Assembly: GCA_965112735.1 (NCBI GenBank)
Contig: CBCOSG010000005.1
Span: 1-30,185 of the forward strand
Direction of reading: 5' to 3'
DNA length: 30,185 nucleotides
Source: Phaeosaccion multiseriatum
Lineage: Eukaryota; Protista; Ochrophyta, other classes
Under the pieces are notes generated by a model. That model did not search any database. It was not told where the DNA came from and worked only from the letters and a program-made list of their open reading frames with translations. The position numbers were made by a program, and so were the translations under genes. Positions 929 to 30,168 of the stretch are shown here, piece by piece (the stretch's first letter is position 1; each line of letters opens with the position of its first letter).

Positions 929-1095
929 ATTTACTTTTACCTTTACTAATTAAAAAATCATAGAAATAAGTTATTTAATTTGTCGTATCTCATCGACAGC
1001 ATTATATCGAAGGCTTTTAATACATTTAATACAGTGTTGATAAATATTAATATATTATTTTAAATTTAGAAAATAGCTACATACATATCATAATA

Positions 1096-1135
1096 AATTT
1101 TTAAGTAAAAAACCCAAATTTTTTACTTAAAAATT
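1096..1135. repeat. Perfect 17-bp inverted repeat (stem-loop) between atpG and atpF
   Basis: aatttttaagtaaaaaa-cccaaa-ttttttacttaaaaatt. Confidence 0.85.
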
Positions 1136-1158
1136 CTATTTTTATCCATATTAGATAA

Positions 1159-1635: not shown

Positions 1636-1753
1636 GAGGATATTATTTATATTCTATAAATTTAAGTTTTATCTAAGAAAACCATCTTAATATTTTATTA
1701 GTTAAGAAAAAAACATAATAAAGTTTTCAATTTTAGAAATTTTTATATAGGTT

Positions 1754-2017
<264 letters not shown>

Positions 2018-2075
2018 TTATAATTGTAAAAAATTTAATTGACAGATTTCAAATGAATATTAAAAGATAGTGTTG

Positions 2076-2807: not shown

Positions 2808-2943
2808 GGTTAGATTTAATTAGATATTGAAATGGTACCTCATGCGAAAATATGCATATAGATATATTTAGTATAAATCATTTTGATATTTATGCATAGG
2901 GTTATAAATACTATAGTATTTTTTTAGTAGTACTAAAAAATAA

Positions 2944-3276
2944 TCAATCCCAACCTTTTTTACTTTGACCTAAAACATAATTTGCAACATCTTCAATATC
3001 TGTATCAGCTAATCGTCCACCAAAAGCCGGCATAGCATTTTTACCGTTTGTTACTTGATATGTAATAGCATTAACACTATCCATACCATTTGTTTCTAAA
3101 GCTTCTTTTTTTAATGTTTTCTCAGGCATGATTACATTATTTCCACCAGCATGGCAAGCAGCACAATTTGCTGTAAAAATACGTTCACCATTCTCAACGT
3201 CAGCTGCATGACTTTGGGTAGAAAAAACATTTAATGCGAATAAACAAATAAGCAAACTTGAAATATATTTTTTCAT
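2944..3276 (-). CDS. petJ: Cytochrome c6
   Basis: Signal peptide, CAACH heme motif, [12 protein letters not shown]. Confidence 0.98.
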
Positions 3277-3378
3277 TACAAACTCAACTATGGTTAATTA
3301 TAAATGGACTCTAAAATTTTGACTCTAATTAAGAATCTAGCAGATATTTTAATTTTTAAAATTCTTTAATTCTATTAT

Positions 3379-3870
3379 TTAATAATAAATTTTACCACCA
3401 CCCCATTTTTCTGAAGCAATTTTAGGTTGTAATAAAATATGTCCTGCAATAGCTTCTAAATCTTCTTCACTTAAAGAACGCATTTTTGGAAAAATATCAG
3501 CACTCTTAATACTAGGATGAATTTCAGCAATAGATTCTAAACCATCATAAGTAGTAGGATTTTTCATATAATCTACTAAAGATTCTATGTTATTACGAGC
3601 GGGTGTCGCTAGACTTAAAGCTTCAGGATCTAAACCTACGTTGGGGTTCGTTTTTGTAATACCACCAGTATGACAGATACCACAACTTGCATTAAATAAA
3701 CGTTTACCACGTTTCACTTGTTCTTGGCTTAAAACTAAAGTTTTTCCTTTAGAATCTACTGATACTGTTCTACTAGCTTCATCTAATTCGATTGCAACTG
3801 CATTAAAATTAAAGACTCCGATAGTAAAAAAACAAAAAGACACAAGAAAGTAAAATACTTTTTTTAACAT
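3379..3870 (-). CDS. psbV: Photosystem II cytochrome c550
   Basis: CGICH, GGITKTNPNVGL, KWGGGKIYY C-terminus. Confidence 0.99.
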   Translation of the reverse strand: MLKKVFYFLVSFCFFTIGVFNFNAVAIELDEASRTVSVDSKGKTLVLSQEQVKRGKRLFNASCGICHTGGITKTNPNVGLDPEALSLATPARNNIESLVDYMKNPTTYDGLESIAEIHPSIKSADIFPKMRSLSEEDLEAIAGHILLQPKIASEKWGGGKIYY

Positions 3871-3944
3871 AATTTTTTTAACATAATTTTTTTATAAAGA
3901 GGAAACCAAGAAGATAAAGAATTTTACTTAGTTTAATTTTTTAA

Positions 3945-4253
3945 CTATTCTTTTTTTGTTTTTTTCAATTGTTCTTTAATCTTTTTACCTAATAAACCAC
4001 GTAAACGTATATTCTCCCATCCTGCTGCTAAACTAAGACTTATAATTAGGACTTGACTAAATAATAATATAGGATCTAATCTCCACCCATGAATAATAAG
4101 AATACAGCTATAAATTAACCCTATAGTTGTAAAAAAAATATCTTCATCTCGCGATAATTCTGGTCTAATAATACGTATTAAATAAAGGAGCGTAACACCA
4201 ATAACCAAAATACACCCTAATAATAAATTTGTGCCGAAACTTATATTAACCAT
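3945..4253 (-). CDS. ycf66: Ycf66 membrane protein
   Basis: RPELSRDEDIFF...HGWRLDPILLFSQ...WENIRLRG. Confidence 0.95.
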   Translation of the reverse strand: MVNISFGTNLLLGCILVIGVTLLYLIRIIRPELSRDEDIFFTTIGLIYSCILIIHGWRLDPILLFSQVLIISLSLAAGWENIRLRGLLGKKIKEQLKKTKKE

Positions 4254-4274
4254 AACCTTAAGTATTTTTTATTT

Positions 4275-4403
4275 CTACACTTCAGGCCCACGGACTAATT
4301 TATCTTTTGTAGCTACAAAAGATAATGCTAATGTAATTGGAACAATAACTACAAGTGTTCCAGCTACTAAACTAAATAAAAAGCTTGATAAAGATGGTGT
4401 CAT
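4275..4403 (-). CDS. psbX: Photosystem II protein X
   Basis: Manual translation [42 protein letters not shown] (42 aa). Confidence 0.92.
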
Positions 4404-4549
4404 AATTTTATTTAAAGAATAAAACTGGAATTAATATTTATAATTATTTAAGATAAATTTTAAAGAAGACTTGGGATACTACAGTAATATTATAATACAA
4501 ATAATAAAAATTTTTTTTTTTATTAATAACGAAAATTTTAAGCTAGATA

Positions 4550-6298
4550 TTAGAGATTGTAAAATCTTAAATGCTCCGTATCAAATCTTAATTTTGCAAC
4601 ACCGACTGGACCATTTCTATGCTTTGCAATAATAATTTCTATAATATTTTTTTCAAGAGTTTGAGGATAATAATACTCGTCTCGGTATAACATCATAACT
4701 ATATCAGCATCTTGTTCTATAGAATTATGAATTAAAATTTTATTAACAATATAATTTGCTAAACTATAAACTTTTAAATCATATAAATAGTTTAATTTAG
4801 AATATAATAACATATTTACACTAACCCATGTAAAAGAGATTAATGTATAAAAACTTTCAGGAAGACTGAGTTTTAAAAAAATTTTATCTTTTCGAGTTAA
4901 TTGATCAACTCTTTTCCAACCTGTATTTGTTAAAATTTTATGATTACTACTTATTTTTAATTTCCATGTTAAATTTGTCTGAAGACGGTAAATTGGTTTA
5001 TACCCAGTATGTTTAATTTTATTAATAACTGTAGGAATAATTTCTTTTCCATTCCACCCTAACACCATAATATTTTTTCTTTTTACCCAGAAATTTTTTT
5101 TTCTTTGTAAATAATTTTGTAAAATCAAACTAAAGCAACCACTTTCTCTTAAATCTGAAAGCAATGGACGTTTATTGATCCGACTTTCTACACCTCGACT
5201 TAATTGGGATAAAGCTAATATGGGTACATTTAAATCCCGGGCTAATTTTTTTAAAATCCTAGTAATCTGTGATAATTCTTGAGCACGGGTTTCATTCCGT
5301 TGTCCTGTTTCAAGCAATTGTAAATAATCAATAATAATTAACCCTAAATTTTTTGTATATTCTTGTTGTAATTGCTTCACTTTAAGAGATAATTCATAGA
5401 CTAATGTATTTGGTGTATCTTCAATATAAATAGATAACTTAGATAATTCTTTTATTATTAAATTTATTTTAACCCACTCATTTTTTGATAAGCGACCAGA
5501 TCGTAGTCTTAAATTATTAATTCCAACTTCATTAGCTAATAAACGGTAAATGAGTTGTTCTTTACTCATTTCTAAACTAAAAAAAACTATATCAGTATTA
5601 AATTTTTTAGCCATATTTTTTGCCAAGCTTAAAGCAAAAGCTGTTTTTCCCATCGAAGGTCGGCCAGCTAAAATTATCATATCAGATTTTTGAAATCCTT
5701 GAATTAAACTATCTAATTGTTCAAATCCTGATGTAAGTCCTGGGTATTTTTTTAATTTTAATTTATATTTAATTTCCACTAAAATTTCATTTAAACCTTG
5801 AGATAACGTAATAAAATTATTACGTTGTTTTTTTTGAGCAATACTGGACAATTTCTGTTCAATAACCAAAAGACTATTGTTAAGTGGGGTACTTGTTAAA
5901 AATCCTAAATCAATAATTTCATATCCTAATTCAATTAATAATCTTCGTAAATATTTTTCATAAACTAAAGAAATATAGTCTTCTAGATAACTAATACTTA
6001 TAACTTGATTAACAAAATCCGCAATAATGGATAAATCCTCTATACAATTTACGAGGCCTTCATCTTGTAAACATGTCACTAGAGTAACATAGTCAATAAT
6101 TTTATCTTTACCATATAAAGATAATGCTGTTTTATAAATAATTTGATGTGATATAATATAGAAAGCCTCTACTGGCAGATATTGACTAACCACTGATATA
6201 GAAGTAGAATTTATTAATATACTACCTAAAATTATTTTTTCGGCAAGAATGCTGTAGGGAAGTGCTTTTTTAGAGGAATCTAGTTCAGACCTGTTCAT
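4550..6298 (-). CDS. dnaB: Replicative DNA helicase DnaB containing an intein
   Basis: ILAGRPSMGKT Walker A, IIIDYLQL, LSQLSRGVESR, LSDLRESG//SIEQDAD, AKHRNGP. Confidence 0.98.
   Translation of the reverse strand: MNRSELDSSKKALPYSILAEKIILGSILINSTSISVVSQYLPVEAFYIISHQIIYKTALSLYGKDKIIDYVTLVTCLQDEGLVNCIEDLSIIADFVNQVISISYLEDYISLVYEKYLRRLLIELGYEIIDLGFLTSTPLNNSLLVIEQKLSSIAQKKQRNNFITLSQGLNEILVEIKYKLKLKKYPGLTSGFEQLDSLIQGFQKSDMIILAGRPSMGKTAFALSLAKNMAKKFNTDIVFFSLEMSKEQLIYRLLANEVGINNLRLRSGRLSKNEWVKINLIIKELSKLSIYIEDTPNTLVYELSLKVKQLQQEYTKNLGLIIIDYLQLLETGQRNETRAQELSQITRILKKLARDLNVPILALSQLSRGVESRINKRPLLSDLRESGCFSLILQNYLQRKKNFWVKRKNIMVLGWNGKEIIPTVINKIKHTGYKPIYRLQTNLTWKLKISSNHKILTNTGWKRVDQLTRKDKIFLKLSLPESFYTLISFTWVSVNMLLYSKLNYLYDLKVYSLANYIVNKILIHNSIEQDADIVMMLYRDEYYYPQTLEKNIIEIIIAKHRNGPVGVAKLRFDTEHLRFYNL
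4724..5137 (-). mobile_element. DnaB mini-intein (138 aa, no homing endonuclease)
   Basis: In-frame insert between LRESG and SIEQDAD; starts with Cys, block B SSNHKILT, block F LYDLKV, ends HN followed by +1 Ser. Confidence 0.95.
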
Positions 6299-6308
6299 TA
6301 ATTATATC

Positions 6309-6758
6309 TTACTTAGAAAGAACTTCTAATTTAATTTGGGCTGTAACTTTTGGGTGTAAAACAATATTTACTGGGTAAGTACCTAATTGTTTTATTGTAA
6401 TAGGTAAAACTTTAAGAATATCTGGTATATCGCATTTTTCTTTTATGGCACCGATAATATGTTTATTAGTTACAGTACCAAAAATTTTATCACTTTTTCC
6501 CGAAGCTTTTTTTATTGAAAATTTTCCAAAATTCTCTATAATTTTTTTATGCGTAAGCGCTACTTCAAAATTTTTTAATTCTTTTTGCTTTAAATTTTCT
6601 ATTCCAGTTGTTAATACTTTTAAGTTTGCTAATTTATTCGGGATTAGATAGTTTCTAACATACCCTGAATTGACTTTCAGGAGTTTCTCTGTTTGACCAA
6701 GTTTTTGAATATTTTGTAATAATATTATTTCTGTAAATTTTTTTGTTTTTTTTGTCAT
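6309..6758 (-). CDS. rpl9: 50S ribosomal protein L9
   Basis: LLKVNSGYVRNYLIP, KIFGTVT, IKQLGTY; adjacent to dnaB. Confidence 0.93.
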   Translation of the reverse strand: MTKKTKKFTEIILLQNIQKLGQTEKLLKVNSGYVRNYLIPNKLANLKVLTTGIENLKQKELKNFEVALTHKKIIENFGKFSIKKASGKSDKIFGTVTNKHIIGAIKEKCDIPDILKVLPITIKQLGTYPVNIVLHPKVTAQIKLEVLSK

Positions 6759-6933
6759 TCGAAATTAATTCTAAGAGTATTTATTAATACTATGGATAAA
6801 TATACATAGCTAAAGTATACTTTAAATCAATTTACTCAGGAATGTCAAATATTAATTTAATTAAAAAAATTCGAAATTTAATTTTCTTTATTTTTAGGTT
6901 TTAGAAAATATACATGTAATATAATATTGTTGT

Positions 6934-6956
6934 TATATATATATATATATATATAT
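6934..6956. repeat. (TA)n microsatellite
   Basis: About 11 TA units in the rpl9-psb28 spacer. Confidence 0.8.
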
Positions 6957-7005
6957 TATTCTAAATAGAAAAAATTTAATTAGTAATAAGGAATAGAAAA
7001 AATTT

Positions 7006-7359
7006 ATGATCGCAAATATTCAATTTATCGAAGGTATAAATGAATTAGTTATCCCTGAAATTAAACTAACACGTTCACGAGATGGGAGTACTGGAACAGC
7101 CACTTTTATTTTTGAAAATCCGAATATATTTAAGAAAAACACAACAAAAGAGGGTGAAATCGATGGGATGTATTTAGTTGATAAAGAAGGAATGATCAAA
7201 ACAACTGATGTTCAAGTTAAATTTATTAATGGAAGACCTACTTCATTAGAAGCGGTCTATATTATGAAAAGTCCTTCAAGTTGGGATAGATTTATAAGGT
7301 TTATGGAGAAATATAGTAAAGAGAATGAATTAACATTTGTACAACCTTTTAAAATTTAA
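7006..7359 (+). CDS. psb28: Photosystem II assembly protein Psb28 (Ycf79)
   Basis: [29 protein letters not shown]...[11 protein letters not shown]. Confidence 0.96.
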
Positions 7360-7404
7360 ACTTTACTAAAAGTATTTAAGATAATTATTTATATTTACTA
7401 AATT

Positions 7405-9549
7405 ATGTATGTTTCCTTAAATTGGTTAAAAACCTTGATTAACATTAAGCAACTAACCTTACCTAACCTTTGCAATAGATTAACATTAGCTGGGTTTGAA
7501 ATTGATAGTATAACTAAGAAAAAATTGCTTGATACTAATGACTATAGTTTAGATATTAGTATTACAGCAAATCGAGGAGATATGTTTAGTGTTTATGGAA
7601 TCGCCAAAGAGATTAGACTATTATTCCAAACTGAACAAACCCAAATAATTTCTTCGTTTAGTCTTTGGCACTACTTTATTCAAAAAAATTATTTTATAAC
7701 GTGTAGTTCACAAAATTTTTCTAAAAATAAGTTTTCAGGCTGTTCATTTTTCGGTTTATTAAATGGTATAACTACTAAACCTCTGGTATCCGCAAAATGG
7801 GTACAAAAACGTTTACTCACTGCTAATATATTTCCAACAAGTAGTATTATAGATATTACTAATGTAGTTTTATTAGAAACTGGCTATTTATTTACTGTTT
7901 ATGACAAAAAAAAATTACAGAATGTAGTTAAAAATAAAGAACTCTTTTTTACAGTACAATGGTCGCGATCCCAGGTCTCATTTGATAATGTAAATAATGA
8001 AAAAATAAATTTAACAAAAAAAAATTTATTAGTTTTAGTAAATAAAATTCCAATTAAAGTTATTGGGTTAAACCAAATTTATAGTTCATTACCAGACCAA
8101 TCAACTAAAGAAATTATTATTGAATGTAGTTTATTTAATCCGATCCAAATCCGTAAATCTACAAATAGTTTAGGATTTCGAACAGAAAGTTCACAGCGTT
8201 TAGAAAAAGATTTAACTTTGGTTGGGTTAGAGCGGGCCCTAATTCGATTAATTTATTTATTTTCTTCTCAGGGTATAAAATGTAATCCTGAGTTTCAAAC
8301 TTCTTTAGTACATTTAAATTTGCATTCTTCATATAAAAATAAATTTTATATTCAACAGCAGAATAAAATAATCAAATTAAAATACAAAAGTATAAATCAA
8401 ATTTTAGGCGAGATTAATAATACAAGTAAAATAACAAAAAAAACAATTTTTACAAGTCTAATTAATCTTAATTTTAAAATTTTGAAAAAGTCCCTGTCTA
8501 ACTGCTATATACTTATTCCTTTCTCACGTTATAATGATATAAACCAAGAAATCGATCTATTAGAAGAAATTGGTAGAAAAATTGGTTTTAATAAATTTAT
8601 TTCAATTCTTCCACTTTCAAACTCCCCTGGTCAATTTTCTCAATTAGAAAAATTAAAACGCAGGTTTAGGGGATATTTATTAAACATAGGGTTAAATGAA
8701 TTATTTCAATATACATTATGTAACAAACATATTAATTTCCAACCAACATTACAAAATCCTATTTTACGTGAAAGTAATGCTTTACGTTCTACGTTATTAG
8801 ATGGATTATTAAACCGCTTACAGTTTAACTTTTTTTCTAGAAAAAGTGTATTAGAAGGATTTGAGATAGGACGTACCTATTCCTATAGTCTTAAAAAAGA
8901 TATAATAGAAAAAGAAATTCTTAGTGGAATTTTCGGAGGGCAAAGTTATAAGTCAAATTGGAATACTTTAGGAAAGGATTTAAATTGGTTTGAAGCCAAA
9001 GGATTATTTGAAGAAATTTTTTGTAAACTTAATTTAAAAATTTATTGGGTATTAGACAAATCTAATTTATCACAAGTTTTCGACCCAGGAAAATTGGGAC
9101 ATTTATTTATTGAAAAAACATATATCGGGCTATTCGGACAGATCCACCCAATCTTAGCAAACAAAAAAAATTTAACAAATAAAATTTTTTTATTTGAGTT
9201 AAACCTAGAAATAATTGAACAATTTTGGCAACCACAAAAATTATTTTCATATAATTTCTATTCTATTTATCCTAGTTCTTCTATTGATTTATCAATTATT
9301 CTAAGCAAACAAATTTCTTTTAAAAGAATTCAAAATTTTATTTATGGCTTAAATCAACCTTTATTAAAAAAAATTTACCTATTTGATTTTTATTCAGGTT
9401 CCCCAATTCCAAAAGGTTATCAAAGTTTTGGTTTTAAATTAAAATTTCAATCCCAAAATCGAACATTAACAAATTATGAAATTGATAAAGAAATTCAATT
9501 TATTAAACAAAAATTAAAAAAAGAGTTTATTCTTATTTTTCGTTATTAA
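7405..9549 (+). CDS. syfB: Phenylalanyl-tRNA synthetase beta subunit
   Basis: MYVSLNWL, LTLAGFE, ITANRGD, RTESSQRLEK, DLLEEIGR, LFDFYSG, RTLT anticodon-binding domain. Confidence 0.95.
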   Translation: MYVSLNWLKTLINIKQLTLPNLCNRLTLAGFEIDSITKKKLLDTNDYSLDISITANRGDMFSVYGIAKEIRLLFQTEQTQIISSFSLWHYFIQKNYFITCSSQNFSKNKFSGCSFFGLLNGITTKPLVSAKWVQKRLLTANIFPTSSIIDITNVVLLETGYLFTVYDKKKLQNVVKNKELFFTVQWSRSQVSFDNVNNEKINLTKKNLLVLVNKIPIKVIGLNQIYSSLPDQSTKEIIIECSLFNPIQIRKSTNSLGFRTESSQRLEKDLTLVGLERALIRLIYLFSSQGIKCNPEFQTSLVHLNLHSSYKNKFYIQQQNKIIKLKYKSINQILGEINNTSKITKKTIFTSLINLNFKILKKSLSNCYILIPFSRYNDINQEIDLLEEIGRKIGFNKFISILPLSNSPGQFSQLEKLKRRFRGYLLNIGLNELFQYTLCNKHINFQPTLQNPILRESNALRSTLLDGLLNRLQFNFFSRKSVLEGFEIGRTYSYSLKKDIIEKEILSGIFGGQSYKSNWNTLGKDLNWFEAKGLFEEIFCKLNLKIYWVLDKSNLSQVFDPGKLGHLFIEKTYIGLFGQIHPILANKKNLTNKIFLFELNLEIIEQFWQPQKLFSYNFYSIYPSSSIDLSIILSKQISFKRIQNFIYGLNQPLLKKIYLFDFYSGSPIPKGYQSFGFKLKFQSQNRTLTNYEIDKEIQFIKQKLKKEFILIFRY

Positions 9550-9569
9550 TCGTTATTAAAAAAGTTGTT

Positions 9570-10361
9570 ATGAATTACATTGATAAATATCGTCCAGACT
9601 ATGGCTCATCGCAATTTATTGAAATTTTAAAAAAATATAAATATAATCCTAAAATTGGTGATATTTTAATAGGTATAGTAATGGGTTTTGAACAAAAGCA
9701 TATTATCTTAGATATTGGTCTACCTAAAATGGCTTTATTACCCTACACAGAAGTTAATATTAAAAAAGTACCACATCCAGAGCAACTTTTAAAACTTAAC
9801 GATCTTATTGAAGTAACTATTATAGTTTTTCAAACAAAACAATTCCTTGTGTCTTTAAAAAAAACTCATTATCTCTATTTATGGGAACGAATTAAACAAA
9901 TGGACTATGCTAGAAGCTCTATCTATGGAAAAAATGTAGAGTCAACGAGATATGGAAAAATTTTAGATTTTGAAGGGCTAAACGTGTTTGTTCCAAACTC
10001 CCACTTACCAAGATACTATAGAAAAAAAGTTTATAAAAAAGAATTTTTACCTATAAAATTCATATATGTAAATACCAGAATAGAAAAATTATTGGTTAGT
10101 TCAAGACTAGCTATATTACAAAAACAGAATTATCTATTAAACGTAGGGATGGTAAAAATAGGCTGTGTGAGTAAAGTTGTTTCTTTTGGTTTATTTATAA
10201 ATATTCATGGGATAAAATGTTTATTACATATTTCTGAAATTTCTAATAAACGAATAGTAAATATAAAAGATTCATATAGAAGAGGAATTCATATTAAAGT
10301 AAAAATTATTTATTATAGTATTTCTCAAGGACGTGTAGCTCTTTCTAGTAAAAGACTTTAA
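9570..10361 (+). CDS. rps1: 30S ribosomal protein S1
   Basis: S1 domains (IGDILIG, FVPNSHLP, FGLFINI..LLHISEIS, RVALS). Confidence 0.92.
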   Translation: MNYIDKYRPDYGSSQFIEILKKYKYNPKIGDILIGIVMGFEQKHIILDIGLPKMALLPYTEVNIKKVPHPEQLLKLNDLIEVTIIVFQTKQFLVSLKKTHYLYLWERIKQMDYARSSIYGKNVESTRYGKILDFEGLNVFVPNSHLPRYYRKKVYKKEFLPIKFIYVNTRIEKLLVSSRLAILQKQNYLLNVGMVKIGCVSKVVSFGLFINIHGIKCLLHISEISNKRIVNIKDSYRRGIHIKVKIIYYSISQGRVALSSKRL

Positions 10362-10585
10362 CCTCCACCTACAATTGTAATAACTTCGATTTCATCATTA
10401 TTCCTTATAGGAGTTATTGACCATTTATTATAAGTACAAAGTTGTTTATTGTGTTCAATTACAATTAAATTTTTATTATAATTAAATAATTTAATAACTT
10501 CTAATATCGTGATTGGATAAACACTAGATATAGAATAAATTTCGTCGTTTAAAGCAAAGAAGGTTAATAAATTTTTTGTAAGCAT
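10358..10585 (-). CDS. thiS: Thiamine biosynthesis sulfur carrier ThiS (Ycf40)
   Basis: IVIEHN...DEIEVITIVGGG C-terminus; stop overlaps the rps1 stop (TTAA). Confidence 0.95.
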   Translation of the reverse strand: MLTKNLLTFFALNDEIYSISSVYPITILEVIKLFNYNKNLIVIEHNKQLCTYNKWSITPIRNNDEIEVITIVGGG

Positions 10586-10660
10586 TAGTAATTGTATTAT
10601 ATTATTATTTGTTCCAATATATTATACTCTTCTTAGTAGAGTACATAATATTCTACGTAA

Positions 10661-10734
10661 GGCGAATGTAGCCAAGTGGTTAAGGCATTGGGTTGTGATT
10701 CCAACATTCGCGGGTTCAAGTCCCGTCTTTCGCC
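10661..10734 (+). tRNA. trnH: tRNA-His(GUG)
   Basis: G-1, D arm GCCAAGTGGTTAAGGC, anticodon arm TTGGG-TT-GTG-AT-TCCAA, T arm GCGGG-TTCAAGT-CCCGT. Confidence 0.96.
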
Positions 10735-10860
10735 CCTATTCAATTTAAAGTTTAGATTTATTATATAGGAAATAATTATTAAATTTTTTTGAATACGGCA
10801 TTATTGTCTTGTTTATTATGATAGTAATTGATTTCTTTAATATATGTTGTATTAAAAAAC

Positions 10861-10889
10861 TTTACAAAATGGAAAAAGTATAATATACT
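10861..10889 (+). promoter_or_regulatory. Putative sigma70-type promoter for psaA-psaB-rps14
   Basis: TTTACA-17 nt-TATACT about 90 nt upstream of the psaA ATG. Confidence 0.5.
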
Positions 10890-10979
10890 ATAGTATTGAA
10901 AACTCATTTTCGAATTCTAAAAAAATTCTTCAAATCTTGAGCGTTTCTTATTTTTTTGTTACTAATAAGGAGAACTACA

Positions 10980-13229
10980 ATGAGCTCAAAAGGGCAAGCA
11001 ACAAAAATTAAAGTTTTAGTAGATCGTGATGCTGTTGAAACAAATTTTAAAAAATGGGCAGAACCAGGGCATTTCGCGAGAACCCTAGCTAAAGGTCCAA
11101 AGACAACAACTTGGATTTGGAATCTGCATGCAGATGCACATGATTTTGATATTCAAACAAGTTCTTTAGAAGATGTTTCGAGAAAAATTTTTAGTGCACA
11201 TTTTGGACAACTGTCAATCATTTTTTTATGGTTAAGTGGAATGCATTTTCATGGCGCATATTTTTCCAACTATTTAGCCTGGCTAAATAACCCAACAACT
11301 ATTAAGCCAAGTGCGCAAGTAGTTTGGCCTATTGTTGGACAAGAAATATTAAATGGAGATGTTGGAGGAAATTTCCAAGGTGTACAGATAACATCAGGAT
11401 TCTTTCAACTATGGCGTTCAGAAGGAATTACAAGTGAAATTGAATTATACTGGATCGCAATTGGAGCTTTAGTTATGTCCGGATTAATGCTATTCGGGGG
11501 CTGGTTTCATTACCACAAAGCAGCTCCTAAATTAGAATGGTTTCAAAATGCTGAATCTATGTTAAATCATCATTTATCTGGATTACTTGGGCTTGGTTGT
11601 TTATCATGGGCTGGTCACCAAATCCATATTGCACTTCCAATTAATAAATTGTTAGATGCTGGAGTAGCCTCACAAGAAATTCCTTTACCTCATGAATTTT
11701 TAATTAATAGAGAATTAATAGCACAACTATATCCAAGTTTTTATAAAGGGTTAGTTCCATTTTTCTCTGGTCATTGGAATGATTATTCAGATTTTCTAAC
11801 GTTTAAAGGAGGATTAAATCCTATAACAGGTGGACTGTGGTTGAGTGATATTGCGCACCATCATCTGGCGTTAGCCGTATTATTTATTTTTGCTGGACAT
11901 ATGTACCGAACAAATTGGGGTATTGGTCACAGTATGAAAGAAATTTTAGAATCTCACAAAGGGCCTTTTACAGGTGATGGACACTTAGGGTTATATGAAA
12001 TTTTAACGACATCATGGCATGCTCAATTAGCTATTAATTTAGCTATGTTAGGTTCTTTAAGTATTATTGTTGCACATCATATGTATGCAATGCCGCCATA
12101 TCCGTATATTGCTACAGATTATGCGACACAATTGTCTTTATTTACTCACCATATGTGGATTGGTGGATTTTGTGTTGTTGGTGGAGCTGCACACGGAGCT
12201 ATTTTTATGGTTCGTGATTATAACCCAGCCCAAAATTACAATAATCTATTAGATCGAGTAATTCGTCACCGAGACTCCATTATCTCTCATTTAAATTGGG
12301 TATGTATATTCTTAGGGTTTCATAGTTTTGGACTATACATTCATAATGATACAATGCGTGCTCTAGGTCGTTCACAAGATATGTTTTCTGATACTGCTCT
12401 ACAATTACAACCAATTTTTGCTCAATGGGTTCAAAATATTCATTTATTAGCTCCTGGAAATACAGCTCCTAATGCTTTAACAACAGCAAGTTATGTTTTT
12501 GGAGGAGATATTGTTTCTATTGGATCCAAAATTGCTATCATGCCAATTAAACTGGGCACAGCAGATTTTTTAGTACATCATATTCATGCTTTTACTATTC
12601 ATGTAACTGTTTTGATATTATTAAAAGGTGTTCTTTATGCGCGAAGTTCTAAACTAATTCCGGATAAAGCAAATTTAGGTTTCCGTTTCCCATGTGATGG
12701 TCCTGGTCGTGGTGGTACATGTCAAGTTTCAGCTTGGGATCATGTCTTCTTAGGTTTATTCTGGATGTATAATTCATTATCAATAGTAATTTTTCACTTC
12801 AGTTGGAAAATGCAATCGGATGTTTGGGGTTCAGTTACTCCTACAGGAGTTGTTTCCCATATTACGGGTGGTAATTTTGCACAAAGTGCATTAACTATTA
12901 ATGGATGGTTACGTGACTTTTTATGGTCACAAGCTTCACAAGTTATTCAATCATATGGATCTGCTTTATCAGCTTATGGTTTAATTTTCTTAGGAGCGCA
13001 TTTTATTTGGGCATTTAGTCTTATGTTTTTATTCAGTGGTCGTGGCTATTGGCAAGAGCTTATTGAATCTATTGTGTGGGCACATAATAAATTAAAAGTT
13101 GCTCCGGCTATTCAACCTCGAGCATTAAGTATTACACAAGGTCGTGCAGTAGGTTTGGCACATTATTTATTAGGTGGTATTGGTACGACATGGGCATTCT
13201 TTTTAGCAAGAATTATTTCGGTAGGATAA
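10980..13229 (+). CDS. psaA: Photosystem I P700 apoprotein A1
   Basis: [28 protein letters not shown]; start placed at ATG 10980 behind the AAGGAG Shine-Dalgarno. Confidence 0.99.
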
Positions 13230-15845: not shown

Positions 15846-15931
15846 ATATTAGAATAAAAAAATTTAGATAGTCAAATTAAATGAAAATGTAGAAAGTATT
15901 TATTATACTTTTTCATTTCTATATTTAATAA

Positions 15932-16063
15932 TTAGAATAAACCAAATTGGTCTAAACCAATCTGATCTGAACGGCGGTATTGTAAATAAGCAACAACAAA
16001 TAAACCAATTAAAGTGACTGGAATAAGACCAAGAACCATTCCAAATAAAAGAGGTTCAATCAT
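15932..16063 (-). CDS. petG: Cytochrome b6f subunit V (PetG), C-terminally extended
   Basis: Manual translation [43 protein letters not shown]. Confidence 0.96.
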
Positions 16064-16161
16064 AAAAAAGTAAGTATTATAACTATCGAGTAATCGATTT
16101 ATTGTATAGACAAAAATTTAATATCGACTCATTAATTTTATATTAAAAATTTTATTTTTTA

Positions 16162-16296
16162 TTAACGGAAACCTACAGCAGCTTGCCAGACAAAAGCTAA
16201 TAATAAGAAAAATACTGGAACAGCCGGTAAGATATCAACAATAGGACTAAAAATTACATAAGCGTCAGGCAATTTCGTTAATACTATACTTTCCAT
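16162..16296 (-). CDS. psbK: Photosystem II protein K
   Basis: Manual translation [44 protein letters not shown]. Confidence 0.98.
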
Positions 16297-16469
16297 AATA
16301 ATTTGACCCTAATTAGAAAAAAATAATTATAATAATTTGTTTAATGAAATAAACTTATGTATGAATATACTACCCTTAAAAGTTATTAAAGAATAAAAGA
16401 AACGGATGTTATTTTTTAAATAACCAACTATATTATATAACATACTACATTATTATTATAAAACCCTAT

Positions 16470-16946: not shown

Positions 16947-17264
16947 TTGAATAATTCTATTTTATTAGTTAAAATACTTAAAAAACCACAGCAAGTTTTT
17001 TTCAGCAACGATATTATGTCTGCGGAAGTTCTTGTACGTTTTCGTTGCCCAATAAATTATCAAATTTATAATATTGGTCTTGCTGTGTTCTGGGGTAGCT
17101 CAGCTACTATCCTTTTAGAATATTATAAAAAAAATGATTATATCATACTAGAGGGTACTGTTGGATTTAAAAAAGTTTTTTTAGATGATAATGGTAAGAA
17201 CAGCCCAAAAGATTTAGAAATATCAGTCTTAAATTTTCACCCTTTTCTGATTAGTAGTTATTAA
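16947..17264 (+). CDS. ycf41: Ycf41 (SSB-like OB-fold protein), TTG start
   Basis: [15 protein letters not shown]..., [17 protein letters not shown]; GGAG 8 nt upstream of the TTG. Confidence 0.85.
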
Positions 17265-17314: not shown

Positions 17315-17763
17315 ATGGATTTTATCAAACCTTATAATAATGATCCTTCTGTAGGACATTTATCTACACCTATTACAACATCGGCAGTAACAAATATAAT
17401 TTTATCAAATTTACCAGCATATCGTCCTAATATGTCACCAATTCTTCGTGGTTTAGAAGTAGGTATGGCCCATGGGTATTTATTACTTGGTCCATTTAAT
17501 ACATTGGGACCGTTAAGAAATTCTAAATTTAGTCTTATGGTTGCTGTTTTATCTACTATTGGCCTAGTAACAATTTTAACACTTTGTTTAGTTATCTACG
17601 GAAAAGTGACATTTAAACCTGAGGATGAAAAAGTCGTTGGCATGAGTTATTTAATACTCGACCATGGGAAAATTTTACTTCTGGTTTTCTAATCGGAGCC
17701 TATGGAGGAGTTGGTTTTGGCTATGTAATATTATTAACTTTACAATCAGGGGGTAATTCATAA
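17315..17763 (+). CDS. psaL: Photosystem I subunit XI (PsaL), interrupted by a 1-nt frameshift at about 17628-17632
   Basis: [32 protein letters not shown]; last TM helix [20 protein letters not shown] lies in another frame, ending TAA 17761-17763. Confidence 0.93.
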
Positions 17764-18065
17764 TGAATACGGCAACAAATAAAAAAACGCCTACTCAAAA
17801 CAGTAGTAAAGAATATATTTTTACAGAAATCGCTCGCATTGTGTCAGCGCATTTGTGTGTAGAATCGTCATCTATTGTCTCAGATTCTAACTTCTCAGAT
17901 TTAGGTGCTGATTCTTTAGATATTGTAGAAATGGTGATGTCTATGGAAGAAGCCTTTGGTATTCCAATGCGAGACCTGAAAGCATTAGATATTGAAACTG
18001 TTGGTCAGGCTGTTTCTTTTGTGCAAAAAAGATTAACCGCGAAAATTGTTAATGAGACGAAATAA
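17763..18065 (+). CDS. acpP: Acyl carrier protein
   Basis: DLGADSLDIVEMVMSMEEAFGI phosphopantetheine-site motif. Confidence 0.96.
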   Translation: MNTATNKKTPTQNSSKEYIFTEIARIVSAHLCVESSSIVSDSNFSDLGADSLDIVEMVMSMEEAFGIPMRDLKALDIETVGQAVSFVQKRLTAKIVNETK

Positions 18066-18094
18066 TAAGACGAAAAAAAAATAATTCAATATGC

Positions 18095-18122
18095 TTGACA
18101 TATCAAAGATAACCAATATACT
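18095..18122 (+). promoter_or_regulatory. Sigma70-like promoter with no intact downstream gene
   Basis: TTGACA-16 nt-TATACT. Confidence 0.45.
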
Positions 18123-18140
18123 GATATAACGCTTTACAGC

Positions 18141-18174
18141 ACTATACATACAAAATATTATTTGTATGTATAGT
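18141..18174. terminator. Perfect 14-bp hairpin
   Basis: actatacatacaaa-atatta-tttgtatgtatagt. Confidence 0.65.
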
Positions 18175-18681
18175 AAAAATTCATTAAATTAAAAAAATAA
18201 GTATTTCTGCAAAATTCATAAAGAAATGGGATACTAGTAAAGCTTCACTTCATTCAAGATACGAATATTAATAATTTAAAGTATGTTTATTCTTTGTAAT
18301 AAATTAGTAATATTAGTCTAATCGTATTGCTGAAATAGCTTTACGGATTGAAAAAATATTTTTTAATTTTGGTTTTCTATTGATTAGGTAAGTAAGGGAG
18401 GCATGTGATTTTGAAAAAACTCTTTAAATAAAAAAAATATTTTGAGTTTTATAGGACTAAAAGTTTTGAAAGCTTTAACTCCAACTTCAAACTCATGTTA
18501 AATTTTGATCTATTTTTGAAAAAAAAAAACAGGTCTTTTTTTTAGGTGAGAAATCAATGCATTATATCCTTAATTTCCCCGCAGTACAAGACTTTAATAG
18601 AATTGGAAGATGCTTCTATCTATTTAAAACTGAAAAGAAAATTCTTCAATAGTCTAACCATGAATAGATTTTTAATATTTT

Positions 18682-20220
18682 CTAGAATATTTCGTAGAAT
18701 CATATGATCTTACTTTGTCCAATTCTTAGAGGAACGAGTTTATTAGTTTCGTATACTTTTCGAGATTTAGTAACTAATTTAAATTTATTTTTGATTCAAT
18801 TATCCTGTTGTAATTGATGAAATAATTCAACAATTAGTTTTTTATTTAATGTTTGCTTGGTTTTGTGTAGAAACATTGAATTGGTCTAAAAAGTCTGTTG
18901 CATGGAATACCTTTTCTAAACTATTAGTACTCATACACTGGATAATTTGAAGCTTTACTTGCAATTGGTAATTTGTTTGATAAATAATAAACGAAGAGGG
19001 GGAAAGAAAATGGATAGTGATACCAATACAACTGCTCGGCTATAAGAATTTTGGTAACCAAATACTTATGTTCTTTTTATATTTCTACAAAAGTAGTGGA
19101 CGCTACACTTCGAAAGTAATCATCAGAAAAAATAGTAATATCAGGAGTGTTATGCTTAAGATCTTGTAAAAAGTTTCAAATTTGTGTTGAGTGGTAGTTA
19201 TTATTGTTCTTGATTTTGGTAAAATCCATAAACTCTTTTACTGGTAACTGTATAAGATAATATTTTTGTGATAATAAATATTTTATAAAATATGGTCTGC
19301 GTCGACTAAAAGATAAGAATTGAAGTAACCAGAAAACAGATTTCTGATTCTCAATAATCTACAAATTATTGCTTGGTAAATAACTAGTAACTAAAGAATC
19401 AATAGATTTGTGAGTTTTTCTAGAATAATGAATAAGCCAATTAGTATATAAATCATCAAGAACTAATACTTTCTTGGAATGTTCATAAAAATATTATGTT
19501 AGTATGTCTTCGAAATTATTTGGATGATTCATAAATAAAAAATCTTGTAAGATTGTTTTTTTCATTTCCAATCCAAACCGTAAACCATTTCGTTTCTCAT
19601 AAACACGATAATAATTTGGGCTTTTTCTAAACCCGATTCGTAAAATGAAGCCTTGATGATTTCGAGTATATTCAACAATATTTTTTTTTTGATCTAAGAA
19701 ATGCTTTCCGACAACACTTATTCATAAATGATTCTAAATCACCTTTTTACTCATTAGACTTTCTTTCTCAAAAATAACAAAGATCAAATCGACTAAAACT
19801 GAGCCTATATAATTTAAAAATATTCCAATCGAATTTTTGTGCCCGTAGAGCTTTGTAAATTTGAGTAGCATTCTTTCCAGAGAAATCTATTTTGGTTCCA
19901 ACCTAAAAACTTTTGGCTTCAGGGTTATATTCGTGCTGCCTAAAAAAAACTTTAAATTGATTTTGTCTAGCATAATTGGAAGACTCCGATTTTCATTTGC
20001 TGTTGATTCTTTTTACAACAGTAAAATTAAATCCGAAGTTTTGAAATAAATAGTTTGCAATTGATTTTGGATTTATCAAACCTTGAATGTTGAAAAGAAG
20101 ATAATCAACTTGTAAATTTGTAGATTCGAAACTTAATTTTTTTTTTTTAATAAGTTTACTTAGGGATAAATGAGTCTGAATAACTAATTGATCTATATTC
20201 TTTTTCTCGTATTTTATTAA
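18682..20220 (-). pseudogene. Decayed plasmid-type replication initiator (Rep_trans-like), about 500 codons
   Basis: Manual translation through about 10 stops and 3 frameshifts: LSFESTNLQVDYLLFN..GTKIDFSGKNA..SRFDLCYF..LRIGFRKSPNYYRVYEKRNGLRFGLEMK..YTNWL..LLQFLSF..YHYPFSFP..FYEIF*; 5' boundary approximate. Confidence 0.8.
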
Positions 20221-20335
20221 TCCTGAGCTATAGGAAATATCTAAAAGTGAGCTGCTAATTTATTTATTGATTTATCCATGCGATAAGATTTAGACTTGTC
20301 TCTTTATTAAGATCACAAGATTTATTTTTCTATAA

Positions 20336-20407
20336 AGGCGGTACTCAGATTTGAACTGAGGAATTTCGGCTTTGCAGACCACTGCCTTACCACTTGGCTA
20401 TACCACC
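20336..20407 (-). tRNA. trnC: tRNA-Cys(GCA)
   Basis: GGTGGTA-TAGCCAAGTGGTAAGGC...CT-GCA-AA...CTCAG-TTCAAAT-CTGAG-TACCGCC-T. Confidence 0.93.
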
Positions 20408-20542
20408 ATTTATTTTTATATTTTAATCGCAGGGAAACTTACTAAAAAAAAAGACGTTGTGTCCAGTCTTGATTTGAATGGTTATAATAATTAAACACTA
20501 GAAGTAGTTTTTAATTATTATATTCACCATTTTATATATTAT

Positions 20543-20962
20543 TTAGTATCTTTCACCAGATGGACGACTTTGAACAGAATAACTGTTAAGAGTGTATTGA
20601 ATATTACGACCCGCAGTTTCAGTTCTATCTAAGTAGAAACCAGGTTCTTGTTGTGGGCGTGAAACAATATATGACATAACACAACTTTCAGTACCAATAC
20701 TTGCATCGAAAGCATTAATTTTGATGTAACCAGTAGTATTAACTCTACGGCACTCAGCTAATTCATACATTACTGCAGCAGAATCTTTAATATCAAACAA
20801 TGGAAGACCCCATAATTCCCAGTAGCAGTTACGTGGATGTGGATCATCTGTCCATTCAACACTAATTGCCCACCCGTTATTGATGGCATATTCTACTTGT
20901 TTTTTAATTTGTGCATCATCTAAATCGTTTAAAAATGAAAAACAACCTTGTGTAAGTCTCAC
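20543..20962 (-). CDS. rbcS: RuBisCO small subunit, form ID (GTG start)
   Basis: MRLTQGCFSFL, WTDDPHPRN.YWELWGLPLFD, C-terminal GERY. Confidence 0.99.
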   Translation of the reverse strand: MRLTQGCFSFLNDLDDAQIKKQVEYAINNGWAISVEWTDDPHPRNCYWELWGLPLFDIKDSAAVMYELAECRRVNTTGYIKINAFDASIGTESCVMSYIVSRPQQEPGFYLDRTETAGRNIQYTLNSYSVQSRPSGERY

Positions 20963-21136: not shown

Positions 21137-21937
21137 CTAGTTAATGAGATTAATTAATAAATTAGTTAATTCTATTATATCAACAGAGAAAGAGTTTTCT
21201 AGAGCGTCTTTTCGCATCTCAATTTCCTCCTTAAGAGTATAAATAAGATTTTCTTGTTCAGTAATAGTTTTAAAGAGATTTTTAATTACTATTGTTTGCC
21301 CTTCACTTTCTTTAATTTGTTCTTCAATTATTGAAATTTTCTCTTCAAGTATTGAATCAGTTGATAAAGCAGTTATTTTTATGTAAATCAGTAGTCCTAC
21401 TACTATTAAAAAAAAGAACCATACAATTTGTAGAGTGAATTCCTCACGTCGAGTAAGTTCGGTTTGTTGCCTAAAATAGGCCCTTACGTTTCGAAGATGA
21501 CGTTTTTCTCGTTTGTTTAATTCTTTGCCCTCTTTTCTCAGAACGCTAAGAAATAGTTTTCTTTGGATAGAAGCTCTTCCTAAATCTTTAAGAACTTCAT
21601 TTTCTCGCTTCTTAAGCTTTTTTCTTTGCTCAGAAAACTGTTTTTGTTGGTTTGAAATAGACAGCTTCTGGTCAGTAATGTCTAGAGTGTCTTTAAAAAT
21701 CTTTTCTTGTTCTTTGATAATTTCTTTTTTAAATTTTAAAAGTGTTGTTATTTGCGTTACAAAAAGTGCATTATAGTCTTGTTTTTTAATCTCTTCTTGA
21801 AGTTTCTTAGTACCCTCAGTTATTTCTCTTAATTTTTTATTCTTTTCTCTTTGTAATTTTATTTTTTCTATAGAAAGAATTAAAGATTTTGAGATTGACC
21901 TGCGTACCCGTCGTAATATCCAACTAATATTTATCAT
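21137..21937 (-). CDS. Orphan 266-aa coiled-coil protein with a single TM helix, in the rbcL-rbcS spacer
   Basis: Uninterrupted 801-nt ORF in very AT-rich DNA, ATG start, same strand as rbcL/rbcS; K/E/Q-rich helices flanking FTLQIVWFFFLIVVGLLIYI. Confidence 0.75.
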   Translation of the reverse strand: MINISWILRRVRRSISKSLILSIEKIKLQREKNKKLREITEGTKKLQEEIKKQDYNALFVTQITTLLKFKKEIIKEQEKIFKDTLDITDQKLSISNQQKQFSEQRKKLKKRENEVLKDLGRASIQRKLFLSVLRKEGKELNKREKRHLRNVRAYFRQQTELTRREEFTLQIVWFFFLIVVGLLIYIKITALSTDSILEEKISIIEEQIKESEGQTIVIKNLFKTITEQENLIYTLKEEIEMRKDALENSFSVDIIELTNLLINLIN

Positions 21938-28572: not shown

Positions 28573-29725
28573 TGACAACACTTATTTTTATTGCATTCGC
28601 AATAATTATTAATTTTTATACTCCAGAAATTAGATAGAGAACCAATCGAGACGGAAGAGTATACAAAAAATAGAGACGTAAAAGGTTTTCCTTATGAATA
28701 TTATAAAGATGAAGTTTTAACATATGAAATGTTAGAATTTCGTATCCGAGCAATGTATACATATTTTATGATGTATATTACCGGTATTTTTTCTGGCAGT
28801 TCGATGCTGAGTCAAGTAGTATTCACACCACCAACCTCGGTGGAAAAATTGATTCCGAATCAACTCGATTCTCAAATCAAGCAAGAAGAATTACTACTAA
28901 CCACACGGAGAGGTGCCATTAATCTTGAGACGTTTAAATTTCTGATTGAATTATATCTGGCATTGACAAGCCTCAAAAAATTCAGAAGGATTTCAGTCCT
29001 CAAGACCCCCAGGACAACACTTTAACTTTGGCCATCCAGGTCAAAGAATGCAACCAAACACACGGGTTGCAGTAAGATCAAATGAGAACCCCATTAATAG
29101 AAATAATGGGGGACCAGGGAATTGCCGGTCACAGAATGTTCCTAATCCTTCTATCCAGGAATTAGCAAACTCTATGAGTCCGGCCCATCGAGAATTTAAG
29201 AAGAAATTTCTCCCGGAACCGGCCCCAGAACGGTATGATACGAGAGAAGTTGCCCCTCCAGTATTTAAAGGATTGGCAACAAATACGAAAACCGGGAAAT
29301 CTGGAAAGACTTCCATGGAGGAGGCTTTAACAATAATTGAAGCCGAATCCAAAAATATGGCTATAGAACCAATTCGGCCGACTAAAGAAGAAATAAAATC
29401 AGTGGATTTAGACTTTAAAGTCCAAGGGCCAGCCCCGTTTACCTATACTGATGTAAAAACTCCGGTAGGATCGGAGATTTTACAGAAACAAGGGCAAACG
29501 GACAATCTAGAGACCGTAAGTTATAGACTCGGTCAAAATATTGTTAAGCAGAAAAGGAAGTTCATTGGTAAAGCCGATGATCTGCTGAGTGAAAAAAATG
29601 TTGGGCATATAGTAGATTTATACTACGTGCCCATTAATGAAAAATCATTCGTTAAAAATAAGATATTAGAAGGTGCCCGAGATGAGGGCAGTGATTCTGG
29701 AATCTCATTTTTAAATGAGAAATAA
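28572..29725 (+). pseudogene. Frameshifted ~383-aa foreign gene: hydrophobic N-terminus, low-complexity linker, PD-(D/E)XK-like C-terminal domain (putative toxin). Joins track ORFs 28729-29025 and 29048-29725
   Basis: ATG overlaps the dnaK stop (TAATG). Removing one T from T5 (28613-28617) and one A from A6 (28975-28980) gives one continuous frame. Motif EEA...DLDFKV...TDVKTP...HIVDL. Confidence 0.6.
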
Positions 29726-29754
29726 ATTATTTATTTTATGTAATACTAAGGTAA

Positions 29755-30168
29755 ATGGAAAAAAATAAACCACATATACTGGTTCAAAATCAATATTTTC
29801 TAAATGAATCGAGCTTAGAAGAGTATATTGCATGGGGTGCTTTGCCTAGAATCTCTTTCGTAGGTTGTCATTTTGAAAACGTTGATTTAATGGGACTAGT
29901 TTTTGGATCTTGTCGTTTTCAAAATTGCACATTTAACCATTTTAACGCTAGGAAAGGTAAGTTTTCAGCTTGTTATTTGGAAGATTGCAAAATGACTAAT
30001 TCGGATATGACAAGAACAGAATTTTACGATACCTATCTTAAAAACTGTGAGTTTTTAGGTGTTGATTTAGCAGCAAGTGATTTTGATAAATGCAAATTTA
30101 AGGGAACAAGGTTTTTAAAATGTAATTTGTATGTAATACTAATTGACGACGTCAAAATTTGGAACTAA
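29755..30168 (+). CDS. Pentapeptide-repeat protein (137 aa, possibly 3'-truncated); candidate immunity/partner protein
   Basis: Regular 5-residue periodicity CHFEN-VDLMG-LVFGS-CRFQN-CTFNH...CEFLG-VDLAA-SDFDK-CKFKG-TRFLK; AAGGT just upstream of the ATG. Confidence 0.85.
   Translation: MEKNKPHILVQNQYFLNESSLEEYIAWGALPRISFVGCHFENVDLMGLVFGSCRFQNCTFNHFNARKGKFSACYLEDCKMTNSDMTRTEFYDTYLKNCEFLGVDLAASDFDKCKFKGTRFLKCNLYVILIDDVKIWN

Follow-up and report, generated by a model that had tools for sequence, protein, structure and literature searches.

A relic of a large plasmid gene in the plastome of a non-diatom ochrophyte and its family of predicted Rep_trans-like replication initiators

What occupies the spacer between acpP and trnC (positions 18066-20335) in the plastid genome (plastome) of Phaeosaccion multiseriatum, where the minus strand has no open reading frame (ORF) of 60 amino acids (aa) or more and where, trnC excepted, neither tandem repeats nor Rfam families were found? 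The spacer lies in a 30,185-nt stretch, positions 1-30,185 of the forward strand of contig CBCOSG010000005.1, which was analyzed as a whole and is called the window below. A preliminary description of this DNA had read the spacer as a minus-strand pseudogene of about 500 codons, broken by about 10 stops and 3 frameshifts and derived from a plasmid initiator of the Rep_trans type. We find that the spacer holds a full-length relic of the large gene of a diatom-type plastid plasmid, and that the intact family probably consists of plasmid replication initiators with two predicted domains, the relic being a dead plastome copy.

That diatom plastids contain small circular plasmids has been known since 1991-92. 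Of the plasmid proteins the recombinases alone were recognized, and the big ORF has remained "hypothetical" through many plastome papers over some 30 years. Plasmid-derived remnants that include this ORF family have been described in the plastomes of diatoms, a dinotom, raphidophytes, and some green algae (PMC2873285, PMC3971590, PMC6608930, PMC8070900, PMC9235467); that plasmid ORFs have entered plastomes outside the diatoms (those of raphidophytes, a dinotom, and chlorophytes) was reported before (PMC9235467), and red-algal analogues of such remnants have also been published (PMC4814812). The relic described here is a case of this published phenomenon and adds a further ochrophyte lineage to it. 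The large ORFs of the diatom plasmids have been treated as hypothetical proteins (PMC2873285, PMC6608930, PMC8070900, PMC9235467), and in the literature that we searched, which was not exhaustive, no paper assigns them to Rep_trans or to any replication function.

A decayed plasmid gene between acpP and trnC

The minus strand was split into stop-to-stop pieces, which were searched with a family profile of 490 positions built from 22 intact homologs. Seven pieces matched with E values of 8e-22 to 1e-5, and weaker pieces fitted between them in strictly colinear order, so that together they span profile positions 2-482; the rest of the 30-kb window gave no other match to the profile. The frame path runs through 20157-19690, 19688-18996, 18994-18848, and 18846-18682, with internal stops at 19995, 19905, 19770, 19749, 19496, 19361, 19178, 19079, 18798, and 18702; the gene ends in a TAG at 18684-18682, and its start codon is lost. 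A read-through of 493 residues, in which X stands for every internal stop (10) and frame joint (3), scored 477 bits against the profile (E 4e-147, positions 2-487). Chance resemblance is excluded, because the pieces match the profile colinearly and the read-through matches it at this level. Stops and frameshifts are as numerous as the preliminary description had counted them; its range of 18682-20220 was right at 18682 and too long at the other end, where homology stops at about 20157. The coordinates are collected in Table 1.

Table 1 Features in and around the acpP-trnC spacer
Feature	Position	Strand	Remark
acpP, left flank of insertion	17763..18065	+	
Remaining acpP-proximal spacer	18066..18491	.	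No similarity to any fetched plasmid locus
Co-integrated plasmid non-coding DNA (~190 bp), downstream of the relic	18492..18681	-	78% identity to L018
Full-length pseudogene (~490 codons), large ORF of diatom-type plastid plasmid	18682..20157	-	Family profile E 4e-147
C-terminal half of the relic, counterpart of the predicted double winged-helix RepE/Pi/TrfA/RctB-like domain	18682..19420	-	Relic colinear with profile
Third frameshift, +4 nt relative to the L018 gene	18856..18864	-	Near 18862
Second frameshift, +1 nt relative to the L018 gene	18988..18996	-	Near 18992
LRIGFRKSPNYYRVYEK...LRFGLEMK, G-x-R-x-S-x4-R-V-Y-x-K motif, then [R/K]-x-E-x-E-x-K strand	19560..19643	-	
First frameshift, +1 A in homopolymer relative to the L018 gene	19680..19690	-	A10 run
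SRFDLCY, R-x-D motif, intact	19774..19794	-	Family R119/D121 = RepC R140/D142
QVDYL, N-terminal strand with family-invariant Asp	20098..20112	-	D16 of P0013
Spacer from 5' end of the relic to trnC	20158..20335	.	No resolvase remnant; plasmid-relative similarity ends here
trnC(GCA), right flank of insertion	20336..20407	-	

The closest intact protein (P0126, 504 aa) shares 72.5% amino acid identity with the relic, and its gene, at 8001-9515 of the metagenomic contig L018, shares 82.5% nucleotide identity. Relative to that gene the relic has two in-frame 6-nt deletions in addition to the frameshifts, and its stops stand in place of W, W, R, Q, R, G, I, Q, L, and R codons. The locus at 18682-20157 is a full-length relic of the plasmid gene, which decayed after integration through point mutations that gave the ten stops and small insertions or deletions that gave the three frameshifts. 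We infer that it is inert in this genome now and has no present function.

That the locus still works through recoding or editing, or that its breaks are assembly errors, might be argued from the A10 run at the first frameshift and from TGA at 5 of the 10 stops. The stops are of all three kinds, however, and replace varied sense codons, so that no single codon reassignment fits; a reading of TGA as sense was rejected on this ground. The other two frameshifts (one of +4 nt), the missing start codon, and a Gly at a nearly invariant Glu also speak against a working gene. As for assembly, short-read contigs of two runs (X1 and X3) agree with the window across the breaks: over 17700-20600 they are identical to it save at 20137, where both are one base shorter in a long T/A homopolymer just upstream of the first conserved codons of the relic. 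Because these contigs agree, the breaks cannot be put down to this one assembly, with the proviso that X1 and X3 are possibly the window's own source. The chance that the locus is functional or misassembled is, in our view, negligible.

In a second sample of the same organism (run X5), the acpP contig has a depth of about 100 and stops at 18112, the rbcS end has a depth of 91-238, trnC is without coverage, and the relic appears as three short pieces only, at a depth of about 3. The insert may be polymorphic for presence and absence, or the pattern could come from a minor haplotype, from carry-over, or from a filter hole.

The intact family resides on small circular plasmids

A search with a 75-aa piece returned 93 proteins at E ≤0.001 among 1.8 billion representatives, many of them 470-510 aa long with the motif at residues ~150-220. 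A profile search placed the size of the family at no fewer than 80 clusters at 90% identity; the matches listed in that search are all "hypothetical" and have no precomputed Pfam domain. One member occurs on contigs of ~3.4-3.6 kb that are indexed in 99 blocks of the collection and whose gene order is circularly permuted. Two of the permuted contigs (L004 and L005), each 3466 nt long, have a 141-nt terminal overlap, which implies a 3325-bp circle; the circle carries a serine recombinase (resolvase) gene, ORF477, ORF270, and ORF31. ORF477, within the range of 470-515 aa that marks the large ORF of diatom-type plasmids, thus stands beside a serine recombinase on a small circle. L011 and L018 have the gene pair too, with the resolvase directly upstream of the large ORF, and in them it is accompanied by genes for tyrosine recombinase and pentapeptide repeats. 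Plastome contigs carry further family copies, often fragmented, between psaA/psaB and psaE/ftsH. Searches of PLSDB, a collection without algal plasmids, by tblastn with the motif piece and with the intact protein P0017 gave chance matches or nothing.

This architecture is that of plasmids published from pennate diatoms. Cylindrotheca pCf1 and pCf2 have ORF218/217 beside ORF482/484 (PMC2873285), and Haslea pHSC1, of 3534 bp, has serC plus orf480 (PMC8070900). Across pCf1 ORF482, pCf2 ORF484, and the Haslea silbo ORFs (pHSC1 orf480, pHSC2/3 orf513/515), the large ORF, as in our family, encodes 477-515 aa and directly follows a serine recombinase gene, the circles measuring 3.3-4.5 kb. In addition, a cluster of the ESM Atlas whose name, assigned automatically, is that of the C. 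fusiformis pCF1 record (ORF482) resembles the model of the C-terminal half described below, with a template modeling (TM) score of 0.61. Architecture, size, and this cluster name lend indirect support to the assignment of the family to the large-ORF type of pCf1/pCf2 and the Haslea plasmids (pHSC/pHSM), a link that the preliminary description had proposed. Plastome remnants of the diatom-type ORF (K. foliaceum ORF141, Halamphora partial ORF484, Fibrocapsa ORF513) resemble the relic in their frequent decay after integration; the relic differs from the diatom plasmid ORFs in that its host is not a diatom. The red-algal Pp6427 orf3 family (405-485 aa), compared here by description only, is similar in size, is plasmid-borne, and leaves decayed plastome fragments, but by BLAST it is reported to be specific to red algae (PMC4814812).

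Contig L018 deserves a separate remark. Positions 1-11751 of this 15.6-kb metagenomic contig contain three rep-like genes and one tyrosine recombinase gene, and a resolvase gene lies immediately before each of two of the rep-like genes; the contig appears to combine several plasmid units. A precomputed Pfam record labels one of its rep-like copies "Rep_trans (weak)".

The N-terminal half resembles the Rep_trans catalytic domain

Conservation was examined in a set of 50 intact sequences with ~39% mean column identity. Matches to Pfam Rep_trans, all below threshold, occur in 34 of 50 members (best E 8.4e-6), and no other Pfam family is matched by more than two members, the rare ones including Rol_Rep_N and Phage_CRI. 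The motif piece of the relic alone gives E 0.017 and 15.2 bits, below the gathering threshold. In hhalign comparisons with the pT181 RepC sequence from NC_001393, the family profile aligned at E 1.5e-5 (79% probability) and an N-terminal profile of the 50 sequences at E 5e-5. A single template was used because a search for RepC homologs, from which a diverse Rep_trans profile was to be made, yielded, among the matches listed, only pT181 relatives at 86-100% identity. The alignment pairs RFD with RLD, GxRxSx4R[IV]YxK with GVRDSNRFIRIYNK, and xFELExK with RVEIELK. Around the tyrosine it is gapless, with G-S-R-D-S-A-N-Y-Y-R-V-Y-E-K on RepC G-V-R-D-S-N-R-F-I-R-I-Y-N-K, and the Glu strand L-E-F-E-L-E-M-K falls on RepC W-R-V-E-I-E-L-K.

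Structure prediction points the same way. The AlphaFold model of an intact member (predicted local distance difference test [pLDDT] score, 89.5) shows a crescent-shaped β-sheet catalytic domain, and the top six Foldseek matches are Rep_trans structures (4CWE, 4CIJ, 4CWC) at probability 1.0, the match beginning at family residue 10 and at residue 3 of 4CIJ. LAGLIDADG endonucleases also appeared among the matches and were dismissed as noise (Foldseek probability 0.1-0.45, TM ~0.1-0.2).

Carr et al. identified Y191 of RepC as the nucleophile, with R189, K193, G180, R140, D142, R212, and E214 as conserved active-site residues and D46, D142, and E214 as metal ligands (PMC4797284). Most of the invariant residues of the family correspond to ones shown or proposed by Carr et al. 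to be catalytic (PMC4797284). D16, R119, D121, R175, Y177, F185, E188, and E210 are invariant in the 50 sequences, and G166, R168, and E186 nearly so. R119 and D121 fall on the RLD of RepC (R140, D142); R175 and Y177 are followed by a consensus Lys two residues after the Tyr, with spacing identical to that of RepC G180, R189, Y191, and K193; and E186 and E188 align with RepC E214 and E216. D16 lies in the first strand, the N-terminal metal ligands being D46 in RepDE and D9 in RepSTK1, and is a candidate counterpart of D46. The relic retains the N-terminal Asp, R-F-D, and G..R-V-Y-E-K. Its putative catalytic Tyr codon is TAT at 19599-19601, and GGA (Gly) at 19572-19574 replaces the first Glu of the Glu strand, at the position of E186.

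The preliminary description located these motifs correctly (SRFDLCY at 19794-19774, LRIGFRKSPNYYRVYEKRNGLRFGLEMK at 19643-19560, the Tyr codon TAT at 19601-19599). It had also taken the first Glu to be mutated to GGA at 19574-19572, where the family comparison indeed sets Gly against a nearly invariant Glu. Its identification as Rep_trans-like agrees with the Pfam, hhalign, and Foldseek results, and the R-x-D, Y-x-K, and R-x-E residues that it had singled out are conserved in intact homologs, R119, D121, G166, R175, Y177, E186, and E188 being invariant or nearly so.

Could the likeness be convergent, or no more than that of a generic TBP-like β-sheet fold with an unrelated function? Rep_trans structures score 3-4 Z units above TBP-like folds and are matched over the whole domain; the three motifs align in order, with identical internal spacing in the Tyr motif (G-x-R-x-S-x4-R-[IV]-Y-x-K); and the other half of the protein independently indicates plasmid replication. 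Convergence is therefore very improbable in our estimate, and the comparisons of sequence and predicted fold support a Rep_trans-type N-terminal half.

The C-terminal half resembles iteron initiators

Residues ~250-498 of an intact member were modeled alone from 48 sequences (pLDDT 87.7). The model shows a tandem winged helix (WH1-WH2), and its first Foldseek matches are RctB, RepE54, and Pi, at probabilities of 0.91-0.97. Its named neighbors in the ESM Atlas are all replication initiators of the Rep3_N/Rep3_C, TrfA, or RPA kinds (TM 0.43-0.58 by query). No match to Pfam Rep3_N, TrfA, or RPA was found in the 10 full-length members scanned. The scores are moderate and their unanimity is persuasive; to judge from the models, the protein looks like a nickase fused to a double winged helix of the iteron-initiator type. 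This domain and the co-integrated non-coding element considered below are new here, the preliminary description having covered neither.

The family shares the predicted tandem winged helix with RepE (mini-F), Pi (R6K), TrfA, RPA, and domains 2-3 of RctB, and arrays of direct or palindromic repeats adjoin the gene in both. It differs from these initiators in having no detectable sequence similarity to them and a global TM of just 0.4-0.6; they lack a nickase domain, whereas here the module sits behind a predicted one.

Repeats adjoin the intact gene in several loci. At 3893-3990 of L013, three perfect 33-bp direct repeats follow from the stop codon of the rep-like gene, and the same is seen in L014 and L015. 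The 33-bp unit contains a small palindrome, AAAAAGTGATACTTTTT, and occurs elsewhere in two copies (L011/L012) or one (L016); a second pair of repeats, of 21 nt, comes after the L013 array at 4111-4162. In the 3325-bp circle (L004:2230-2305), a unit of 24-28 nt, TTTTAAAAAAAATAGATCAATTTTTAACG, occurs in three copies whose orientation alternates and whose arms are 100% complementary, ~120 nt past the stop codon. The arrangement expected of iterons, repeats next to the gene, is thus found in L013-L015 and in L004, and binding of the protein to them is predicted; the 33-bp array is a candidate iteron array.

These observations might be expected of a theta-type initiator whose C-terminal half binds the repeats and melts the origin as RepE, Pi, and TrfA do, the Rep_trans-like N terminus having an accessory job (binding of single-stranded DNA, oligomerization, or nicking for resolution only). 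The C-terminal matches to RctB, Pi, RepE, and Rep3/TrfA/RPA clusters would suit such an initiator, as would the three 33-bp direct repeats beside the gene and the A/T-tract-rich regions downstream. The invariance of the Tyr, its flanking Arg, and the carboxylates over 50 sequences as divergent as these is, however, hard to explain without catalysis. Nor is the DNA-binding half an argument against rolling circle, because pT181-type Reps also have a separate C-terminal domain for origin recognition (PMC4797284). We consider the theta-type alternative unlikely.

A predicted nicking initiator

If the intact protein is an initiator that joins both halves, as we think probable, it could work as follows. 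Residues ~10-240 would form a non-HUH catalytic domain of the Rep_trans type, as predicted from sequence and structure. At the origin, the Tyr of R-[IV]-Y-x-K would attack one strand and form a covalent bond with the 5' end of that strand, helped by a divalent metal that the Asp of R-x-D, Glu residues of the F-E-x-E strand, and an N-terminal Asp would bind. Residues ~250-500, the predicted double winged helix like that of RepE, Pi, TrfA, and RctB, would read the repeat arrays immediately downstream. From the 3'-OH left free, plastid enzymes would start rolling-circle, or at the least nick-primed, DNA synthesis. The serine recombinase encoded alongside would convert multimers to monomers and could bring about insertion into plastid DNA.

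Several points weigh against an initiator of this kind. The Pfam gathering score for Rep_trans (PF02486), 29.6 bits, is not reached, the best whole-protein score being 22.2 bits. The hhalign probability is just 67-80%, with a single-sequence template. Hidden Markov model searches of PDB sequences with the family profiles A1 and A2 gave nothing at E values up to 10, so that kinship with Rep_trans is visible only to profile-profile and fold comparison. Within the motifs, the position of RepC R212 is R or K in just about two-thirds of the members, RepC A144 and D146 are unconserved, and the spacing from the Tyr to the Glu strand is far shorter than in RepC. Near the relic, no other plasmid gene was found with the resolvases of L001, L011, and L018, ORF270, ORF31, and others as queries. 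Finally, a nickase predicted to be paired with an iteron-type domain would fit either rolling-circle or theta replication.

The protein would also be a distant member of its kind. Identity to RepC and RepD of the pT181 family and to Geobacillus RepSTK1 (PF02486; 4CWC, 4CWE, 4CIJ) is ~13-19%, under the Pfam threshold. Compared with RepC and RepD, the hairpin between the Tyr and Glu strands is much shorter, the protein is ~180 residues longer, and the hosts are eukaryotic plastids rather than Firmicutes; where RepD has a small helical DNA-binding domain, the C-terminal part here is a predicted double winged helix.

A transfer or mobilization relaxase or an integration nickase, comparable to the MOBT relaxases of Tn916- and ICESt3-type elements, is another role that a Rep_trans domain might serve: Rep_trans takes in conjugative relaxases, MOBT among them (PMC4797284, PMC6499999), and the elements clearly travel between plasmid and plastome and from one algal class to another (PMC9235467). 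When the circle measures 3.3-3.5 kb, though, one other enzyme alone can be recognized, the serine recombinase. The smallest circles thus offer no second protein as a candidate for replication, which makes a relaxase the less likely role. We also know of no conjugation machinery in plastids. A relaxase or integration nickase seems to us decidedly unlikely, and the replication initiator is the reading that we retain.

A fuller proposal would make the large ORF a chimera of a Rep_trans tyrosine nickase and a RepE/TrfA-like iteron reader, the AGATCAAnnTTTAAC repeat its origin, and these plasmids the first rolling-circle (Rep_trans) replicons of a eukaryotic organelle, spread across ochrophyte classes; its chances appear to us about even. 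Once the large ORF is assigned with confidence to the nicking initiators, with an identifiable active site and a possible origin, the replication of diatom plasmids becomes testable; the assignment would also explain why the large ORF, with or without serC, is the piece that most often decays in plastomes. It also offers a base from which to design plastid vectors that replicate themselves in diatoms and allied algae. For annotators, the relic means that long "empty" spacers in ochrophyte plastomes can be plasmid scars, and the host range of these elements is extended to a relative of brown and yellow-green algae.

Plasmid non-coding DNA beside the relic

Downstream of the relic, the window aligns with L018 beyond the gene: the 208 nt from 18699 to about 18492 are 78% identical to L018:9498-9701. 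The alignment terminates in an A/T hairpin plus AGATCAAAATTTAAC. Past the end of the gene, both L018 and the window (18497-18515) share the AGATCAAnnTTTAAC core of the palindromic unit of L004; in the window, AAATAGATCAA at 18505-18515 forms part of the core beside the A/T-tract hairpin. The window retains just one degenerate repeat unit, and the motif count by itself is not significant in the window. As a lead only, the sequence suggests that 18492-18681 may be a remnant of a plasmid origin or of a Rep-binding element.

Plastome setting and other features of the window

By its gene content, the window is a stretch of a red-lineage plastome. It includes atpF/G/H/I, petJ, psbV, ycf66, dnaB with an intein, rpl9, psb28, syfB, and an S1-domain gene; trnH, psaA, psaB, rps14, psbZ, psaL, and acpP; and trnC, rbcS, rbcL, rps4, groEL, and dnaK. 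The nearest named relatives of the rbcL protein are those of Vaucheria (91%), Chrysoparadoxa (89%), brown algae (87-89%), and raphidophytes (88%). Because of these neighbors, the host is, by sequence, a non-diatom ochrophyte near brown and yellow-green algae, as the preliminary description had supposed in placing it outside the diatoms. A reading of the window as a red-algal plastome, with a tie to the red-algal Pp6427 orf3 family, was dropped given the rbcL neighbors. Seven proteins of the window were sought as exact matches in the protein collection, and none is there.

In the acpP-proximal part of the spacer, a perfect 14-bp hairpin at 18141-18174 is probably the 3' stem-loop of acpP. The genes rbcL and rbcS are adjacent as a rule; here an intact 266-aa ORF (ORF266; 21137-21937, minus strand), without a Pfam match, lies between them. 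ORF266 was considered as a counterpart of plasmid ORF270 and rejected for want of homology to the 270-aa ORFs that the plasmid loci carry. The psbZ-psaL gap holds a 105-aa ORF with a TTG start (16947-17264, plus strand) that gives a sub-threshold match to Pfam SSB (E 0.007, 16.8 bits). The rps14-psbZ gap of ~620 bp (15846-16469) contains no ORF of 60 aa or more, no tRNA, and no match to the rep-like family profile. The intein-bearing plastid dnaB lies at 4550-6298 on the minus strand, with Pfam Intein_splicing at residues 409-525.

Finally, a pentapeptide-repeat gene adjoins dnaK at 28729-30168. A 225-aa ORF of the window (29048-29725) was tested against the 231-aa neighbor of a pentapeptide gene in L011, a plasmid-type contig, and is not homologous to it. 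The pentapeptide-repeat gene has counterparts in kind at 4069-7004 of L011, where two pentapeptide genes stand at most ~4 kb from resolvase and rep-like genes.

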